A stretch of 64,000 nt of DNA, taken from NCBI RefSeq assembly GCF_000006765.1, contig NC_002516.2. One strand, written 5' to 3'. This document shows positions 5,508 to 15,964 of the stretch, piece after piece. Made by a program: the position numbers and the translations under genes. The notes beneath the pieces are model-generated. The model saw nothing but the letters and a program-made list of their open reading frames with translations. It was not told the origin of the DNA and did not search any database. Origin of the DNA: Pseudomonas aeruginosa PAO1 (GTDB taxonomy: Bacteria > Pseudomonadota > Gammaproteobacteria > Pseudomonadales > Pseudomonadaceae). Numbering within the stretch: the stretch's first letter is position 1; every line of letters starts with the position of its first letter.

Positions 5508-6530
5508 TCAACTCCCCTGCAACGGCGCGCCGTCCTGGAAGAAATAGTCCTGCCAGGAGGCCGGCTTGTTGCGGATCGCACCGACCCGGTAGAGAAACTC
5601 CGCCAGCGGATAGGTGTTCTTCGGCGTGACGCTGAACTCCACCTGCGGATTGGCGATGATCTTCAGCAGCGCGGCTCGGTCGATCTTCGCCCCGGTCACC
5701 CGGATATAGGTATCGGCGGCCGCCGCCTTGTCGTTCTGGGCGAAGGCCGCCGCTTCCTTCAGCGCCTCGACGAAGGCCCGGTAGGTCTTCGGGTTGTCCT
5801 GGCGGAACTTCTCCGTGGCGAACAGCACGGTCGGCGAATTCGGCCCCAGCAGCTCGTAGCTGTCGAGCACCACGTGGACCTTCGGGTTGGCCAGCGCCTG
5901 GTCCTGGAACGGCGGGTTGGAGAAATGCCCGGTCAGCTCGGTGCCGCCGGCCACCAGCGCGGCGGTGGCGTCCGGATGCGGCAGCGCCACGGTGTACTTG
6001 TCGAGGCGGTCGAACTGCTTGTCGCCCCACTGCTTCGCCGCGGCGTACTGGAGGAAGCGCGACTGCACCGAAACCCCCACCGCCGGCACGGCGATGCGAT
6101 CCCCGGCGCCGAAGTCGGCGATGCTCCTGACCCGCGGGTCGTTGCTCAGCAGGTAGTAGGGGAAGTTGCCCAGCGAAGCCACCGCCTTGACGTTCTGGCG
6201 CCCGCGGGTACGGTCCCAGATGGTCAGCAGCGGACCGACGCCGGCACCGGCGATATCGATCGCCCCGGACAGCAGCGCATCGTTGACCGCCGCGCCGCCG
6301 GACAGTTGGGTCCAGTCGACCTTGATTTGCAGGCCCTCGGCCTGGCCGTGCTTTTCGATCAGGCGCTGGTCGCGGACCACGTTGAGCAGCAGGTAGACGA
6401 TGCCGAACTGCTCGGCGATGCGGATCTCGCCCTCGGCCTGCGCCGGCCGGCTGGCCAGCAGCGTGGTGGCGAGGCTCAGGCCCAGGCCGAGCGCGGCGAC
6501 CAGGCGGGTGAAACGGGGAATGCGGTTCAT
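5508..6530 (-). CDS. ABC transporter periplasmic substrate-binding protein (SsuA/TauA-like)
   Basis: Signal peptide ending AQA; operon position; no Cys and no internal Met. Confidence 0.85.
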   Translation of the reverse strand: MNRIPRFTRLVAALGLGLSLATTLLASRPAQAEGEIRIAEQFGIVYLLLNVVRDQRLIEKHGQAEGLQIKVDWTQLSGGAAVNDALLSGAIDIAGAGVGPLLTIWDRTRGRQNVKAVASLGNFPYYLLSNDPRVRSIADFGAGDRIAVPAVGVSVQSRFLQYAAAKQWGDKQFDRLDKYTVALPHPDATAALVAGGTELTGHFSNPPFQDQALANPKVHVVLDSYELLGPNSPTVLFATEKFRQDNPKTYRAFVEALKEAAAFAQNDKAAAADTYIRVTGAKIDRAALLKIIANPQVEFSVTPKNTYPLAEFLYRVGAIRNKPASWQDYFFQDGAPLQGS

Positions 6531-6570: not shown

Positions 6571-7458
6571 TCAGAACGGCGCGTCGCCCTGGATGGTGGT
6601 GCGGTAGAGCTTGCGCCGCAGGTGGGCCGGGCAACCGCCGGCGAGATGGATCAGCGAGCGGTTGTCCCAGAACACCAGGTCATGCGCCTGCCAGCGATGC
6701 CGGTAGATGTGCTCGGGGCGCACGCTGTGCGCATACAGCTCGGCGAGCAGTTGGGCGCTCTCGTCGGCCGGCAGGCCGACGATGCGGGTGGTGAAACCTT
6801 CGCTGACGAACAGCGCCTTGCGCCCACTTTCCGGGTGGGTGCGCACGATCGGATGGACCACTTCGCGCACCTCGGCGAGCTGGGCGGCGCTCAGGGTCGG
6901 CCGCCAGTTGCCCTCGAAGCGCGGTTCGCTGTAGCGGGCGGTATAGGAATGCGCCGCCGTGCGTCCCTCGATGGCCTTGCGCAGGGCTTCCGGCAGGCTG
7001 TCCCAGGCCTTGTGCATGTCGGCGAACAGAGTATCGCCGCCCTCCTCCGGCAGCTCCTGGGCATGCAGCATCGAGCCGAGGCTCGGCAGCTCCTTATAGG
7101 AAAGGTCGGAGTGCCAGAACTTGCCGGCATCGCCGAGACCGATGGGCTGGCCGTTCTCGACGATGTTGGAAACGATGAGGATCTCCGGATGCCCTGGGAG
7201 CAGGAACTGCTTCAGCACATGGATCTGCAACTCACCGAAGCGCCGGCTGAAGGCGATCTGCTGCGCCGGGGTGATGCGCTGCTCGCGGAACACCAGCACA
7301 TGGTGGTCCAGGTGCGCCCGGTGGATACGGCGGAAGTCCTCGGCGGCCAGGGGCAACCCGAGGTCGAGGCCGAGCACCTCGGCGCCGAACGCAGCGTCGA
7401 GGGCACGGATCTGCAAGGGAACGTCGGCGCGCGCTGGCGCCGGAAGGGAAACGGACAT
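6571..7458 (-). CDS. TauD/AtsK-family alpha-ketoglutarate-dependent dioxygenase
   Basis: HxD motif WHSDLSY, VHPIVRTHPESGRKALFV, WDNRSLIH; GGGAG RBS before MSVSL. Confidence 0.92.
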   Translation of the reverse strand: MSVSLPAPARADVPLQIRALDAAFGAEVLGLDLGLPLAAEDFRRIHRAHLDHHVLVFREQRITPAQQIAFSRRFGELQIHVLKQFLLPGHPEILIVSNIVENGQPIGLGDAGKFWHSDLSYKELPSLGSMLHAQELPEEGGDTLFADMHKAWDSLPEALRKAIEGRTAAHSYTARYSEPRFEGNWRPTLSAAQLAEVREVVHPIVRTHPESGRKALFVSEGFTTRIVGLPADESAQLLAELYAHSVRPEHIYRHRWQAHDLVFWDNRSLIHLAGGCPAHLRRKLYRTTIQGDAPF

Positions 7459-7559
7459 CGCTGACTCCCACGCAAGCCCGGACACGCCAGGCACGAGATA
7501 CCGCGCAAGGCGGCATGGATTCGGTGCGGCGCGCCGATTGGTCGGCAGGTACGCGAGAG

Positions 7560-7690
7560 CCTTTAATTTATTGGAATAAGAAAATTAATTTAAATATCTT
7601 TAAAGAATATAAATATGCTGCTCCGTACGGTTCGGCGTTCCTTGTAAGCACAAAAGTGAATTAATAAATAAAAACTTAGTATTTATGGCT
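7560..7690. promoter_or_regulatory. AT-rich divergent promoter region between the TauD/ABC operon and the peptide/XRE genes
   Basis: Sharp AT-rich island in a GC-rich background, between divergent genes. Confidence 0.6.
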
Positions 7691-7747
7691 CTAAGCGGCG
7701 AAGGGATAGTCTGGCTGCCATCGAACCCGCCGCCCGAGGAATGCCTC

Positions 7748-7906
7748 ATGGACCGCACCGACAACGTCATCGATTTCGCCCGCTACCGCTCGCGCCGCCA
7801 GGCACGCCGCCTGGGCGAAATGATGTGGGCGGTGTACGCCTGGCGGGCCGGCTACGCCGTGCCGCAACCGCCAGCCAGGCACGACGAGCGCAGCCGCCGG
7901 GCCTGA
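7748..7906 (+). CDS. Small hypothetical protein (52 aa, MDRTDNVIDFARYRSRR...)
   Basis: GAGGA RBS 7 nt before ATG 7748; stop lies 3 nt before the XRE gene start. Confidence 0.65.
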   Translation: MDRTDNVIDFARYRSRRQARRLGEMMWAVYAWRAGYAVPQPPARHDERSRRA

Positions 7907-7909
7907 CCG

Positions 7910-8542
7910 ATGAACCTGCCCGCCAGCGATGGCGTTGCCCACCTGGAACTGGCCGCCGGCGTGCATACCGAACCCGATGATCTGATTGGCCAGCGCGTCG
8001 CCCACAACCTGCTGCGCCTGCGCGGCAAGCGCAATCTCTCGCTGGACGCCCTGGCGCGGATTTCCGGTGTCAGCCGGGCGATGCTGGCGCAGATCGAGTC
8101 CGGGCGCAGCGTGCCGTCGATCAAGGTGCTGTGCAAGATCGCCCAGGGTCTCAAGGTGTCGGTGGCAGCCTTCCTCGACGATCGCGCCTTCGCCGGTGTC
8201 GCCGTGCTGCCGGCGCAACAGAGCAAGCGCCTGGTCAGCGCCGACGGCGCCTTCACCAGCCGCGCGCTGTTCCCCTTCGATGTGGCGCGCCAGGTGGAGT
8301 TCTACGAACTGCGCCTGCGCGGCCTCGGCCAGGAAGACGCCGAAGCCCACGCCCCCGGTACCCAGGAGAACCTGGTGGTGGCGCAGGGGGTACTGGAAGT
8401 GCGGGTCAACGAGGAGCGCTTCCTGCTCGCCACCGGCGACTCGATCCTGTTCTACGCCGACCAGCCGCACAGCTACCGCAACCCCGCCGATAGCGAAGCC
8501 CTGGCGTACCTGGTGATGACCTACCCGGAGCGCCTGGACTGA
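7910..8542 (+). CDS. XRE-family HTH transcriptional regulator with C-terminal cupin sensor
   Basis: LSLDALARISGVSRAMLAQIESGRSVPSIKVLCKIAQGL HTH; cupin AHAPGTQENLVV...GDSILFYADQPHSYRN. Confidence 0.9.
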   Translation: MNLPASDGVAHLELAAGVHTEPDDLIGQRVAHNLLRLRGKRNLSLDALARISGVSRAMLAQIESGRSVPSIKVLCKIAQGLKVSVAAFLDDRAFAGVAVLPAQQSKRLVSADGAFTSRALFPFDVARQVEFYELRLRGLGQEDAEAHAPGTQENLVVAQGVLEVRVNEERFLLATGDSILFYADQPHSYRNPADSEALAYLVMTYPERLD

Positions 8543-8569
8543 CCCCCGGCCTTGCTGCCATGGACGAAG

Positions 8570-8602
8570 AAAGGCCCGCCCGGTCATCCCGGGCGGGCCT
8601 TT
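8570..8602. terminator. Bidirectional intrinsic terminator
   Basis: Perfect 14-bp inverted repeat AAAGGCCCGCCCGG / CCGGGCGGGCCTTT with a 5-nt loop, between convergent genes. Confidence 0.85.
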
Positions 8603-8618
8603 TCCATCCGGCGACGGA

Positions 8619-9122
8619 TCAGCAGGTGCAGCACATCATCGGCATGCCGTTGCAACTCATCATCATCGGCATGCCGCACTCCATCATCTTCGCCATCAGC
8701 ATGCAGCAGTTCTTGAACATCTCCATGTCCATGCCCTGCATCGGCATCATCCTGCAGTGCATGGCGTCGCCCTGCATGGAGCACTCCATCATGCACTTCA
8801 TCGGAGCCATGCCCATCATCGGCATGCCCATCCCCATGCCCATCGTCGGCATCATCGCCATGCAGGCCTGGGACATGCCCATCATCGCCAGGTTGCCGCA
8901 CTGCATCATCATGGGCATGCCGCAGTTCATCATCATCGCCATCATCTCGGCGCTGTTGCGGAACTGGCCCATGTCCATACCCATCGCCGGCATCATCTTG
9001 CACAGCATGCCGTCGTCCATCGTTTCGCACTGCATGGTCGCCATCATCATCGGCATGCCCATCATGGGCATCATCGGCATGGCGGCATTCATGTTCATCG
9101 GCATCTGCATGGCATTCATCAT
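8619..9122 (-). CDS. Methionine/cysteine-rich protein of 167 aa with two internal repeats; function unknown
   Basis: AGGAG RBS 8 nt before ATG 9122; manual count 67 Met and 15 Cys; two homologous repeats of about 60 aa; followed by a terminator; candidate TTGCCG-N16-TAGAAT promoter at 9197-9170. Confidence 0.8.
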   Translation of the reverse strand: MMNAMQMPMNMNAAMPMMPMMGMPMMMATMQCETMDDGMLCKMMPAMGMDMGQFRNSAEMMAMMMNCGMPMMMQCGNLAMMGMSQACMAMMPTMGMGMGMPMMGMAPMKCMMECSMQGDAMHCRMMPMQGMDMEMFKNCCMLMAKMMECGMPMMMSCNGMPMMCCTC

Positions 9123-9421
9123 GGCGGTAACTCCTGTAGGCGAAGCGGGGGTAGGTGCGAATGGGGCCGATTCTAGGCAGCGCCGACGCACCGGCAAGAT
9201 GCCGGTGCAACAGCCGAGCCGGGCGCTGCATGGTGGCTAGCGGCGAGACAGCGAAGATGTTCGGCGCAATGACAGCGGATTCCGCTGCATGGCGGAGGAA
9301 CGCATCGTCACAGCCGGTATTTCGACGCGATGGATATTCGAAACGGACCTATCCAAATAACCCAGGTGAATAAACGTTCTAAGACCCGCAGCCTTTTTCC
9401 CCTTGCCGGGCGCAGCCCCGT

Positions 9422-10675
9422 CTATTGCGCCGCTTTCCGGTGCTCGGACGATGCCCTGCGGAAGTCGCGCGGGCCGACGCGGAAAGCGTGCGCGGCATTG
9501 CCCCAGACCAGCACGGCGGCCAAGCCGATCAGCGGTAGCAGGGTCCAGGGCAGCATCTCGCTGCCCCAGCGCTGCAACACCATGCCACCCAACGCTCCGC
9601 CGCCGGCGATGGCCAGGTTCCAGGCCACCACGATCATCGATTGGGCCAGGTCGGCGCCCTCCCCGGCGGCGTCCGCCGAGGCGGTCTGCAGCAGCGTCGC
9701 CGCGCCACCGAACGTCAGCCCCCAGAGGGCCAGGCCGGCGAACGCCAGCCAGCTCCAGCGAGCGCCCAGGCACAGCGCCAGCGCCGCCACGGCGAACAGC
9801 GCCAGGCTGGCCAGGACCATCCGCCGCAGGTGCCGGTCGACCAGCACGCCGACCAGCCAGATTCCCGCCACCGCGGCGCTGCCGAATACCAGCAGGGCCA
9901 GGTCCACCGAGGCGCCCAGGCCGACCTTGGCGAGGAACGGCGCGATATAGGTGTAGAGGATGTTGTGCGCCAGCACCCAGGCGACGATCACCAGCAATAC
10001 CGGACGCACGCCCGGCGTGCGCAGCACCCCGAGCAGGCGCAGGCGCCGCCCGGCCGGCTGGCCAGGGAAGTCCGGCACGCTGCGCAGCACCCAGCCGACC
10101 AGCAGCAGCGCGGTCAGCGACAACAGGCCGAAGGCCCAGCGCCAGCCGAGCAGGCCGCCCAGCCAGGTGCCCAGCGGAACGCCGAGCGACAGCGCCAGCG
10201 GCGCACCGAGCATGGCCACCGCCAGCGCCCGCCCCTGCTGCTCCGGCGGCACCAGGCGCCGCGCGTAGCCGGCCAGCAGGCCCCAGGCGAGGCCGGCGGC
10301 GACGCCGCTGCCGAAGCGCGCCAGCAGGGTCAGGCGGTAATCCGAGGAAACGGCGGTGAAGCTGTTGCAGACGAAGAAGATCAGCAGCGCCAGCAGCAGC
10401 ACCCGGCGCCGCCGCCAGCCCTGGGTCAGGCTCGCCGCCGGCAACGCGGCCAGTAGCGAACCCAGGGCATAGACGCTGACCAACTGCCCGGCCAGCGCCT
10501 CGCTGACCGCCAGCCCCGCGCCGATTTGCGGCAGCAGGCCGGCCGGCAGGGTTTCGCTGAGAATGGCGACGAAGCCGGACATCGCCATCGCCAGCAACGC
10601 GCTCAGCGGCAGCCGCGGCGCCACGGCCGACGCAGCGGCCCCGGCGTTCTCCGGAAATGCTTCGCGGCGTCCCAT
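9422..10675 (-). CDS. MFS transporter (DHA1 efflux-like)
   Basis: SETLPAGLLPQI, LTQGWRRRRVLL (motif A-like), about 12 hydrophobic segments; TGATG overlap with the upstream hydrolase. Confidence 0.88.
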   Translation of the reverse strand: MGRREAFPENAGAAASAVAPRLPLSALLAMAMSGFVAILSETLPAGLLPQIGAGLAVSEALAGQLVSVYALGSLLAALPAASLTQGWRRRRVLLLALLIFFVCNSFTAVSSDYRLTLLARFGSGVAAGLAWGLLAGYARRLVPPEQQGRALAVAMLGAPLALSLGVPLGTWLGGLLGWRWAFGLLSLTALLLVGWVLRSVPDFPGQPAGRRLRLLGVLRTPGVRPVLLVIVAWVLAHNILYTYIAPFLAKVGLGASVDLALLVFGSAAVAGIWLVGVLVDRHLRRMVLASLALFAVAALALCLGARWSWLAFAGLALWGLTFGGAATLLQTASADAAGEGADLAQSMIVVAWNLAIAGGGALGGMVLQRWGSEMLPWTLLPLIGLAAVLVWGNAAHAFRVGPRDFRRASSEHRKAAQ

Positions 10676-14658: not shown

Positions 14659-14874
14659 GACACCGAAGAGACGGCGAGCCGTTACGCAAGGCGTGCGCCT
14701 GCGGCGCTGCCCAACCCTCGACACGCCCCCGTAGGGCGAATAACCGCTCGCGGTTATCCGCCGTGAAACCCGTCGTAACGGCGGATAGCGCCTGCGGCGC
14801 TATTCGCCCTACCGGCAAGCCGTTACGCCCGGCGACGCTGCCCAACCCTCGACATGTCCCCGTAGGGCAATGAA

Positions 14875-14887
14875 ATGGACTCCTCCC
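14875..14887 (+). repeat. Left subterminal inverted repeat ATGGACTCCTCCC
   Basis: Exact reverse complement of 16224-16236. Confidence 0.95.
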
Positions 14888-14947
14888 TCCTACGGCGTCA
14901 AGCGCCAGACTAATGGTGCAGCCACAAGTCCCGGAGGGGGAGTCAGC

Positions 14948-15964
14948 ATGAACCTTAGTCGCATTGGTCTGGATCTGGCAAAACAAGTATTCCAGGTGCA
15001 CGGCGTTGATCGTCACGAGCATGTGGTATGTCGTCGCCAACTCAAGCGGGCACAGGTGCGGGATTTCTTTCGCCAACTGCCGCCGTGCCTGGTGGCGATG
15101 GAGGCCTGCGGCAGTGCGCACTACTGGGCGCGCGAGTTGCGGGAGCTGGGCCACACGGTACGCCTGATCGCACCGCAGTTCGTAAAACCCTACGTCAAGG
15201 GTGACAAGCACGATGCACACGACGCCGAGGCGATCTGCGAAGCCGCCAGTCGTCCGAGCATGCGCTATGTCCCGGTGAAGAGCGCAGAGCAGCAGGCCGT
15301 GCAGTCGATGCATCGGGTGCGCAGTCGTCTAGTGCGGGCCCGCACGGCGTTGTGCAATGAGGTGCGTGGCTTGCTGGGTGAGTTCGGGCTGATCGCGACT
15401 CGACGTGGGCGAGCGGCGACGATGGCCTTGCTCGAAACGGTCATGGCTACCGAGCCGGCGCCCTTGCCGGCCCCGATGGGCGAGCTGTTGCGTGAATTGA
15501 AAGATGAATTGCAGACGCTGGAGGCGCGCATCGCTCGACTGGAGCGACAGATTCAGGCTCACGTACGTGGCGATGCCCGCATCCAGCGCCTGCTGGCGGT
15601 GGAAGGCATCGGCCCGATCAGCGCCAGCGCGGTGGCGGCATCCGCCGGTGATGCACGGCAATTCCGCACGGGCCGCCAGTTTGCGGCCTGGCTGGGCCTG
15701 GTGCCACGGCAGCACTCCACGGGCGGGCAGCAGCGCTTGGGCAACATCAGCAAGCGCGGCGATACCTACTTGCGGACCTTGCTCATCCATGGCGCCCGTG
15801 CAGTCGTGCGCTGTTGCGCCAACAAGACCGATGCCCGCAGCCGCTGGCTGCAAGGTCTGCTGCAACGGCGTCCTGCCAATGTCGTCGCCGTTGCCCTGGC
15901 CAACAAGAATGCCCGGATCCTTTGGGCTTTACTCAGCCGGGAGACATGCTACCGGCCCGGTTGA
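14948..15964 (+). CDS. IS110/IS1111-family transposase (DEDD recombinase), 338 aa
   Basis: IGLDLAK, VAMEACG, KHDAHDAEAIC (DEDD); C-terminal GLVPRQHSTGG serine motif and GDTYLRTLLIHGA; GGAGGGGG RBS. Confidence 0.96.
   Translation: MNLSRIGLDLAKQVFQVHGVDRHEHVVCRRQLKRAQVRDFFRQLPPCLVAMEACGSAHYWARELRELGHTVRLIAPQFVKPYVKGDKHDAHDAEAICEAASRPSMRYVPVKSAEQQAVQSMHRVRSRLVRARTALCNEVRGLLGEFGLIATRRGRAATMALLETVMATEPAPLPAPMGELLRELKDELQTLEARIARLERQIQAHVRGDARIQRLLAVEGIGPISASAVAASAGDARQFRTGRQFAAWLGLVPRQHSTGGQQRLGNISKRGDTYLRTLLIHGARAVVRCCANKTDARSRWLQGLLQRRPANVVAVALANKNARILWALLSRETCYRPG

Follow-up and report, generated by a model that had tools for sequence, protein, structure and literature searches.

A methionine- and cysteine-rich protein family paired with an XRE-cupin regulator in Pseudomonas aeruginosa and other bacteria: a possible sulfur amino-acid reserve

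Storage polymers of bacteria are known for carbon, nitrogen and phosphorus; we know of none that is a protein store for sulfur amino acids. Searches of the literature for bacterial methionine (Met)-rich or sulfur-storage proteins of this kind yielded only MrpX, a set of Met-rich proteins from the Gladyshev laboratory and plant storage proteins, with no bacterial sulfur-storage counterpart. Here we describe a gene in a 64-kb stretch of Pseudomonas aeruginosa PAO1 DNA (64,000 nt of NC_002516.2, the window below) that encodes a protein of 167 aa with 67 Met and 15 cysteine (Cys) residues (8619..9122, minus strand, stop codon included). The gene belongs to a conserved three-gene module, in which a small open reading frame (ORF) of 52 aa and the gene of an XRE-cupin regulator, both on the plus strand, run toward the Met-rich gene on the opposite strand. 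What the protein does can be proposed only tentatively, and a reserve or buffer of sulfur amino acids is the role that we put forward.

MrpX of Azospira suillum is a periplasmic protein with 20% Met and 44% charged residues that is induced 20- to 60-fold by chlorite or hypochlorite and recycled by YedY/MsrP (PMC4436054). It resembles the protein described here in that it is a small bacterial protein defined by its Met content and encoded beside a dedicated regulator, but it carries a signal peptide, lies in an operon with yedYZ (msrPQ) and is served by the extracytoplasmic function (ECF) sigma/anti-sigma pair SigF/NrsF (PMC4436054). By description, the P. aeruginosa protein is set apart from MrpX by 40% Met, 9% Cys, 9.6% charged residues, a compact predicted fold, the lack of linkage to methionine sulfoxide reductase (Msr) genes and an XRE-cupin partner. 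The Met-rich proteins of the Gladyshev laboratory contain 21–33% Met and have served as substrates in redox assays, their natural function being unassigned (PMC3514235); the family described here has 36–47% Met. Nostoc FeNos/MRP1 (33% Met, 12% Cys; PMC3514235) is similar in Met:Cys ratio and size class, and as it was compared by description it may or may not belong to the same family.

Among plant proteins, the delta-zein DZS18 contains 24% Met (PMC3514235). Delta-zeins and 2S albumins share a logic with the reserve that we propose: they are dense in Met and Cys, stabilised by Cys, made in sulfur sufficiency and mobilised later. The likeness is a functional analogy only, as these proteins are eukaryotic, pass through the secretory pathway and have no sequence or fold relation to the Met-rich protein (no Pfam match). 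Metallothioneins and Csp, like the Met-rich protein, are small cytoplasmic proteins dominated by sulfur ligands. They are Cys-based, with little or no Met, and form recognisable families in metal regulons, whereas Met outnumbers Cys 4.5 to 1 in the Met-rich protein, no family model matches it and no metal gene is consistently linked to it. On the regulatory side, eight XRE-cupin regulators of P. aeruginosa have been described as palindrome-binding dimers that act locally, as highly specialised repressors of the metabolic genes next to their own (PMC7901475). The published units (ErfA, PsdR, PauR and PA2312; PMC7901475) have the same HTH_3 and Cupin_2 architecture and the same tight linkage to a specific neighbour as the unit examined here, but in the latter the cargo is a Met-rich protein and a 52-aa ORF, not an enzyme or transporter, and the gene pair is convergent. 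Nothing among the curated families, solved structures and papers searched describes the Met-rich protein family; its XRE-cupin regulatory frame is of a known kind, its cargo is not.

Coding strand and expression signals of the Met-rich gene

The Met-rich gene occupies the gap between PA2312 and a major facilitator superfamily (MFS) transporter gene in the local gene order PA2309–PA2323. Translation of 8619..9122 gave the 67 Met and 15 Cys residues that the initial annotation had counted, so that sulfur residues amount to 49.1% of the protein. An ORF on the plus strand is just as open, and the coding strand therefore needed to be settled first. This second ORF (8560..9240, plus; 226 aa) is rich in isoleucine and is the usual database annotation here. 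The third codon positions of the two frames coincide, and the G+C content at these positions (GC3) is 0.96 in both.

If the Ile-rich ORF were the real gene, it would encode a small membrane protein, extend the small-ORF/regulator operon on its own strand and leave the Met frame as its shadow. A search with it returned at least 210 clusters of "homologues" from many Pseudomonas species, labelled "hypothetical protein", "membrane protein" or "putative membrane protein". Comparative data make this reading extremely improbable. In a comparison of 36 Pseudomonas-type orthologues, the Met frame has the lowest ratio of nonsynonymous to synonymous substitution rates (dN/dS), 0.23, followed by the Ile frame with 0.70 and the other frames with 0.9–1.3. 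The Met frame is unbroken in 46/46 family loci and 62/62 distinct metagenomic variants, which answers the question of frame conservation raised by the initial annotation; the Ile frame contains internal stops in 11 of these loci and 20 of these variants. The plus-strand ORF also starts at the foot of a terminator hairpin, and its ends are not conserved. An integral membrane protein on the opposite strand was rejected on these data, which combine internal stops with the lack of a purifying-selection signal.

Wobble positions point the same way. In 71 Met-majority columns of the 36 sequences, ATA occurs once and ATT not at all, and ATG changes to ATC (Met to Ile in the preferred Ile codon) 15 times. 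Read as plus-strand Ile codons, the same alignment holds one synonymous change of ATC to ATT or ATA in ~2,500 codons and 15 nonsynonymous changes of ATC to ATG. Degenerate codons of the Met frame, by contrast, do show A or T at the wobble position in a clear minority of cases, for example in 28 of 135 codons for Asn and 43 of 176 for Ala. By genetic-code reasoning, the Ile frame is open because the sense frame has no Tyr codons, very few NNT codons and a high GC3. The comparative evidence thus indicates that the minus-strand Met frame is a genuine protein-coding gene of P. aeruginosa.

A start codon, Shine-Dalgarno sequence and promoter are conserved ahead of the Met frame. The Shine-Dalgarno sequence AGGAG (9132..9136, minus) lies 9 nt 5' of the ATG, and relatives keep GGAG, GGGAG or AAGGA 6–9 nt before theirs. 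A sigma-70-type promoter, TTGCCG-N16-TAGAAT (9170..9197, minus), is the sole promoter-like site that a scan found in 8400..9500, where shuffled sequences predict 0.3; in Pseudomonas relatives it is conserved as CTTG(T/C)CG-N17-(C/T)TAGAAT. Between the two convergent genes, a hairpin with a 14-bp G+C-rich stem and T-rich runs on both strands (8570..8602) has the form of a bidirectional intrinsic terminator, and the 76-nt intergenic stretch that contains it has fold energies of -44.6/-48.6 kcal/mol. A simple terminator scan made no call at this hairpin because each T-run has fewer than 5 T. The ribosome-binding site, promoter and bidirectional terminator had all been proposed in the initial annotation; the first two are borne out by scan and conservation and the third by folding.

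Further upstream on the minus strand, an imperfect yAGC-N10-GCTG dyad is conserved 5' of the -35 element (9200..9290). Loci L001–L035 share conserved elements ~60 and ~150 nt 5' of the Met-rich ATG, with a TAGCAG/CTGCT box at ~150 nt. Parts of these elements resemble a sigma-54 -24/-12 element, but a sigma-54 promoter was considered and rejected: a TGGCA...TTGCT-like element is conserved, yet its GG and GC are consistently set one base too far apart, and in many species the GG is missing. Rfam scans of the whole window, and at permissive settings over 7400..9500, revealed no riboswitch or known RNA. A tblastn search of plasmids with the Met-rich protein gave no match, and the gene is therefore not plasmid-borne.

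The family has largely escaped notice: as a rule, automated annotation places the gene on the other strand, at the Ile-rich shadow ORF. In a collection of ~15 billion predicted proteins we found neither the exact 167-aa protein nor its 192-aa in-frame TTG extension nor a 215-aa minus-strand ORF of another frame; the 226-aa shadow ORF is present in the same collection. Searches with the Met-rich protein returned 36 clusters, mostly from raw-read assemblies, and a profile search of 1.84 billion representatives returned only 58 matches, none of them a characterised protein. Among NCBI-sourced P. aeruginosa proteins, the Met frame is represented by a single partial entry. The exact sequences of the regulator, the MFS transporter and the small ORF occur on at least 1000 contigs, and the named members of their clusters are all P. 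aeruginosa. A 96%-identical Met-rich entry, P0139, is labelled Listeria monocytogenes and probably stems from a contaminated assembly. Searches at the DNA level, in contrast to those of protein collections, find the real gene in 42 species-level genome loci and 202 metagenome stretches, so that the homologue and synteny search in the correct frame that the initial annotation had called for is now in hand. The metagenome stretches come mostly from close Pseudomonas relatives and add little diversity. By gene numbering, PA2313 is the ORF annotated in the gap; published PA2313 phenotypes are cited below only on the condition that they concern the Met-rich gene.

Predicted fold and conservation of the protein family

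To describe the protein, an AlphaFold2 model was built with a 38-sequence alignment (mean predicted local distance difference test score, pLDDT, 77.8; predicted template modelling score, pTM, 0.69). The N-terminal tail, rich in Met, Pro and Asn (residues 1–25; 9048..9122, minus), is predicted to be disordered, with pLDDT <50 for residues 1–19. It is followed by domain 1 (residues 26–83; 8874..9047, minus), a linker (residues 84–107; 8802..8873, minus) and domain 2 (residues 108–167; 8622..8801, minus), which bears the conserved Cys set of the family and ends in CCTC. Each domain is predicted, at a pLDDT of ~90, as a 16-residue helix between two beta-hairpins. The linker consists of a short helix and the low-complexity stretch GMGMGMPMMGM, is modelled as disordered at residues 94–105 and varies in length among strains; the P. 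aeruginosa entry P0001 lacks four residues in this stretch, consistent with slippage in an ATG-GGC repeat. The two domains correspond to an internal repeat of ~60 aa, and a local alignment of one half against the other scores 180, compared with 67 +/- 9 for shuffled sequences. When one domain is modelled alone, its topology is kept but pLDDT falls to 70, which hints at packing between the two domains of the tandem and at dimers among single-domain relatives.

No described family accounts for this fold. Pfam and NCBIfam scans gave nothing at E up to 10, a sequence-profile search of the PDB nothing at E up to 1, and Foldseek searches of the PDB with the two-domain and one-domain models nothing below E=0.07. 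Inspection revealed no signal peptide: the first 40 residues contain no Lys or Arg, of which the whole protein has only six, and the N-terminus is Pro-rich and predicted to be disordered. By this inspection, the protein is cytoplasmic; Met residues make up both the core and the surface of the predicted domain.

Across the family, five Cys, two Pro, one Gly and a set of Met are invariant or nearly so, including C123, P127 and C157 (P. aeruginosa numbering). Three points of the initial annotation are upheld: the ~60-aa repeats by the alignment of the two halves, the folded state that it read from conserved Cys, Gly and Pro residues by their near-invariance across phyla and by the confidently modelled domains, and the absence of a signal peptide by the inspected N-terminus. 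Met content stays at 36–47% in Gamma-, Beta- and Alphaproteobacteria and Myxococcota, even at 40–50% identity. The tandem architecture occurs in Pseudomonas, Janthinobacterium, Paucimonas, Steroidobacter and Pseudoxanthomonas; a single domain with a long repetitive Met/Pro/Gly tail is found in Sorangium, Kofleriaceae, Magnetospirillum, Phyllobacterium and many metagenomic contigs. The tails of relatives are repetitive and of variable length, and in some single-domain relatives (P0023, P0035, L042) the tail is expanded into a long (MMPMxG)n. In four relatives (P0074, P0084, P0063, P0068), many core Met residues are replaced by Leu, Val or Ala and the Cys residues are kept; the fold therefore does not require Met. 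From these comparisons, Met-richness itself looks like a selected property.

A subgroup at loci L047–L049 (P0012, P0013, P0015, P0041) has only 28% Met and flanks of MBOAT and MYG1-like genes; its role or regulation may differ. A precursor of a ribosomally synthesised and post-translationally modified peptide was rejected, as maturation enzymes are not conserved among the neighbours and a folded protein of 167 aa would be atypical.

The composition of the protein bears on two other roles. It could be a chelator that sequesters soft metals (Cu(I), Ag(I), Hg(II), Cd(II)) in the cytoplasm, a Met/Cys counterpart of metallothionein or of the Csp proteins that store copper, with thioether and thiolate ligands supplied by its Met-rich tail and Cys-bearing domains. 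The high content of Met and Cys fits this role, as do the MxM, MMPM and MGM strings in tail and linker, which resemble the Cu(I)-binding Mets motifs of Ctr1, CopA/PcoA and CueO, and the conservation across phyla of about five Cys positions and of the fold, which exceeds the needs of a store. However, Met-based Cu(I) sites typically belong to periplasmic proteins and this protein has no signal peptide, nor does any Pfam or NCBIfam model of metallothionein, Csp or a Met-rich copper-binding family of the PcoE, SilE or CopM kind match it. With the neighbourhood data given below, we regard a chelator as unlikely.

Alternatively, the protein could be a sacrificial oxidant sink like MrpX, in which surface Met is oxidised by HOCl or peroxide and re-reduced by Msr enzymes. 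MrpX provides a precedent (PMC4436054), and PA2313 is induced in biofilms and its transposon mutant is reportedly more susceptible to tobramycin in biofilms (PMC9262955), which would bear on the sink if the insertion lies in the Met-rich gene. The same mutant is as susceptible to H2O2 as the wild type (PMC9262955), which counts against the sink only if the insertion hits the Met-rich gene. Other features also speak against it: much of the Met would have to be buried in the compact predicted fold, the fifteen Cys would suffer irreversible damage, the share of charged residues is far from that of MrpX, and a signal peptide and a SigF/NrsF-type regulator are both missing. Msr genes are likewise missing from the neighbourhood (see below), and a sink appears very unlikely.

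The XRE-cupin partner, the small ORF and the genomic neighbourhood

The convergent partner of the Met-rich gene is an XRE-type helix-turn-helix and cupin regulator (7910..8542, plus; Pfam HTH_3, E=3.6e-13, and Cupin_2, E=5.3e-11), which by gene order is PA2312 itself. It adjoins the Met-rich gene in ~38/42 genome loci, including those of Steroidobacter, Kofleriaceae, Pseudoxanthomonas, Magnetospirillum, Phyllobacterium and Sorangium, and is found at 45/47 metagenome loci (stretches of at least 9 kb, to which all metagenome neighbourhood counts refer) as well as at L050, L051 and L055. The regulator is 32% identical over its full length to E. coli SutR (YdcN), which the E. coli record annotates as a sulfur-utilisation regulator (reference cited in PMC8464067). 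Its closest solved relative is 1Y9Q from Vibrio cholerae (E=1.4e-25), the cupin pocket of which holds D-methionine (Trouillon et al. 2021, PMC7901475).

In its operon of two genes, PA2312 comes second (PMC7901475). The first is a small conserved ORF of 52 aa (7748..7906, plus; PA2311 type), the stop codon of which lies 3 nt before the regulator ATG. Its product, annotated as hypothetical in P. aeruginosa, starts MDRTDNVIDFARYRSRRQARRLGEMMWAVYAWRAGY..., has no match in a Pfam scan and carries the motif V-I-D-F-x-x-Y-R-K-R-x-Q-A ... M-W-x-x-Y-A. The small ORF precedes the regulator in >30 Pseudomonas loci and is recognisable in L041, L043–L046 and L050; distant relatives are weaker and keep VIDLxEYRRxRQ and a Trp-rich tail, and L055 has a 53-aa ORF at this position. 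In published RNA-seq data of a PA3973 overproducer, PA2311 (6.7-fold) and PA2312 (3.3-fold) are up together with the sulfate-starvation genes PA0283, PA0284, cysT and PA3445-46 (PMC9736018).

Two palindromes recur in the promoters of the module. The promoter of the small-ORF/regulator operon contains an AT-rich palindrome, TAAATA-N9-TATTTA (7665..7685, plus), and AAAT-N11-ATTT occurs in 24/33 Pseudomonas regulator promoters, whatever the upstream neighbour, as against 0/33 Met-rich promoters. The intergenic region 7560..7690 is strikingly AT-rich in a window with 69% G+C. A second palindrome, TCCG-N6-YGGA, a candidate for a shared operator in distant lineages, lies 110–150 nt 5' of the Met-rich ATG in L036, L041 (twice), L050 and L051 and also within the regulator-operon promoter of L043/L044 and L050; 8 of its 13 occurrences in 132 kb fall in Met-rich or regulator-operon promoters.

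Beyond the module, all-against-all clustering of neighbouring ORFs revealed no further family common to most loci. Minority recurrent neighbours are sulfonate-type binding proteins and ABC parts, SsuD-like monooxygenases, SfnB-like acyl-CoA dehydrogenases, MetQ with its permease, TonB receptors with ECF sigma/FecR pairs and sigma-54 activators. The window itself contains a sulfonate cluster of TauD, an NMT1-type binding protein, an ABC ATPase and a permease, which is no conserved neighbour of the Met-rich gene. Any sulfur-scavenging gene is found in the flanks of 16/42 genome loci (SsuA/TauA-type binding proteins, SsuD-like monooxygenases, SfnB-like dehydrogenases or MetQ) and 12/47 metagenome loci, so that the location inside a sulfur-scavenging region stressed by the initial annotation does not hold as a conserved trait. 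Its statement that the neighbours are depleted of sulfur applies on one side only. Near-zero Met and Cys is the classic sulfur-sparing composition of sulfate-starvation proteins, and the binding protein of the sulfonate cluster (5508..6530, minus; PA2309 type, 340 aa) has no Met or Cys past its start codon, while sulfur residues make up 1.3% of TauD; the genes on the other side of the Met-rich gene have an ordinary 2–3%.

In two distant lineages, the neighbours include genes of sulfur amino-acid metabolism. At L043–L046, a row of metQ, cystathionine beta-synthase (CBS), cystathionine gamma-lyase (CGL), small ORF and regulator converges on the Met-rich gene, and cysteine dioxygenase lies 5' of the latter on the opposite strand in divergent orientation. 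In Magnetospirillum (L041), CGL and CBS are located directly 5' of the Met-rich gene, with PALP and CGL past the regulator. A link to sulfur amino acids, as the initial annotation had supposed, thus runs through the SutR-like XRE-cupin partner and through CBS, CGL, MetQ and cysteine dioxygenase, not through the adjacent sulfonate cluster.

At two distant homologues, another regulator takes the place of the XRE-cupin: a convergent Rrf2-family protein with an 88-aa ORF at L054 (7441..8159) and a divergent ArsR-type HTH_20 protein at L053 (4860..6713).

These neighbours also suggest another sulfur-linked role, in which the protein carries or buffers reactive sulfur (persulfide, H2S) on its Cys residues or acts as a partner or signal input of the XRE-cupin/small-ORF pair. 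CBS and CGL, which together with cysteine dioxygenase flank the module in two lineages, produce H2S and persulfide, and the Rrf2 and ArsR-type families, non-orthologous members of which stand beside the distant homologues, include cysteine and persulfide sensors. The conserved Cys set and the tightly kept convergent gene pair would fit as well. Such a role nevertheless leaves 36–47% Met and the repeat-expanded Met-rich tails unexplained, and neither the neighbour families present in at least three loci nor the genes listed for other contigs include rhodanese, SQR or persulfide dioxygenase. We consider it quite unlikely.

The neighbourhood is equally informative on metals and oxidants. Queries with CopA, CueR, CusRS/CFBA and CueO found none consistently linked among 55 family loci and none in the window. 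The single P-type ATPase, and thus possible metal pump, beside a Met-rich gene in the 55 loci, a weak match (34% identical to part of E. coli CopA), is encoded in a Pseudomonas metagenome-assembled genome (L020, 5503..7236), in an insert of ~6 kb between the Met-rich gene and the regulator. CusR/CusS queries match two-component regulators in 5/55 loci, which we take as generic, and the 47 metagenome loci gave one CusC-like match. The ATPase of L020 and the ArsR-type regulator that one distant homologue faces on the opposite strand would suit a chelator; against it stands the near-universal regulator, an XRE-cupin of the type that senses metabolites, which belongs neither with MerR, CsoR and CopY nor with the two-component sensors of copper. 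The genomic context thus gives no support to the Cu(I)/Ag(I) sponge that was an alternative in the initial annotation. Its other alternative, the oxidant sink, has almost none: MsrA/B/P/Q are found at 0/55 family loci and are absent from the window, and an MsrP homologue within 6 kb at 3/47 metagenome loci is what the neighbourhood offers in its favour.

Farther along the window, an IS110-family transposase gene (14870..15964, plus; DEDD_Tnp_IS110 and Transposase_20) lies between DAO/LysR genes and a gluconate cluster (LacI-type regulator, kinase, GntP).

A possible reserve of sulfur amino acids

The near-constant pairing with a methionine-type sensor-repressor argues that a store or buffer of sulfur amino acids, made when Met is plentiful, is the most likely role of the Met-rich protein, and we propose it as a tentative assignment. 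Extreme Met and Cys density kept by selection (36–47% Met, repeat-expanded tails) is what is expected of a sulfur-rich storage class. In the mechanism that we envisage, the XRE-cupin would be a local repressor, released by a metabolite of its pathway like its characterised Pseudomonas relatives, and this metabolite would be methionine or a closely related sulfur amino acid. Synthesis of the Met-rich protein would then be confined to times of sulfur amino-acid surplus, and each chain would lock up 82 sulfur atoms as Met and Cys, which proteolysis in times of shortage would give back as sulfur amino acids. Where CBS and CGL, the enzymes of reverse transsulfuration, are co-located, freed Met could be converted to Cys. 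Cysteine dioxygenase disposes of excess Cys and CBS/CGL convert Met to Cys; the positions of these genes fit production in surplus and later conversion of freed Met. That the protein would be the first dedicated proteinaceous Met/sulfur reserve in bacteria, under the control of a Met-sensing XRE-cupin repressor and a 52-aa partner, is a more specific claim, and we make it as a doubtful one.

Several observations weigh against a reserve. An exhaustive enumeration of dyads in the Met-rich and regulator promoters of Pseudomonas found no exact palindrome in common, so that in this genus regulation of the Met-rich gene by the XRE-cupin is proposed from synteny alone. PA2312 is alone among the P. 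aeruginosa XRE-cupin regulators in having no determinable regulon, owing to insolubility of the protein and to a lack of expression in rich medium (PMC7901475). Crystallisation could be the source of the D-methionine in 1Y9Q, and induction could be by surplus or by shortage. Sulfur-scavenging neighbours occur at only 26–38% of Pseudomonas-type loci, which are phylogenetically non-independent. The subgroup with 28% Met has no XRE-cupin nearby, and the two distant homologues at L054 and L053 adjoin regulators of other families. Finally, the fold and Cys positions appear, from the low dN/dS of 0.23, to be kept more strictly than a pure store would need, which would fit specific binding, for example a metal site.

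The Met-rich gene is missing or mis-stranded in essentially all annotations although it is spread through the genus Pseudomonas, P. aeruginosa and the P. fluorescens and P. putida groups included, and into Alpha- and Betaproteobacteria and Myxococcota. The case shows in concrete terms how genes of odd composition can be concealed in GC3-rich genomes, and published array and RNA-seq results for "PA2313" may concern the wrong frame. With 36–47% Met and yet a predicted compact domain that has no structural relative, the family tests how far one flexible residue can build a hydrophobic core. Should the protein prove to be a metal binder or oxidant scavenger instead of a reserve, it would still represent a new family for that role. 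If the storage function is true, it would offer a gene, a regulator and a signal that are all defined, and it would give PA2312, the sole P. aeruginosa XRE-cupin regulator without a known regulon, a function.

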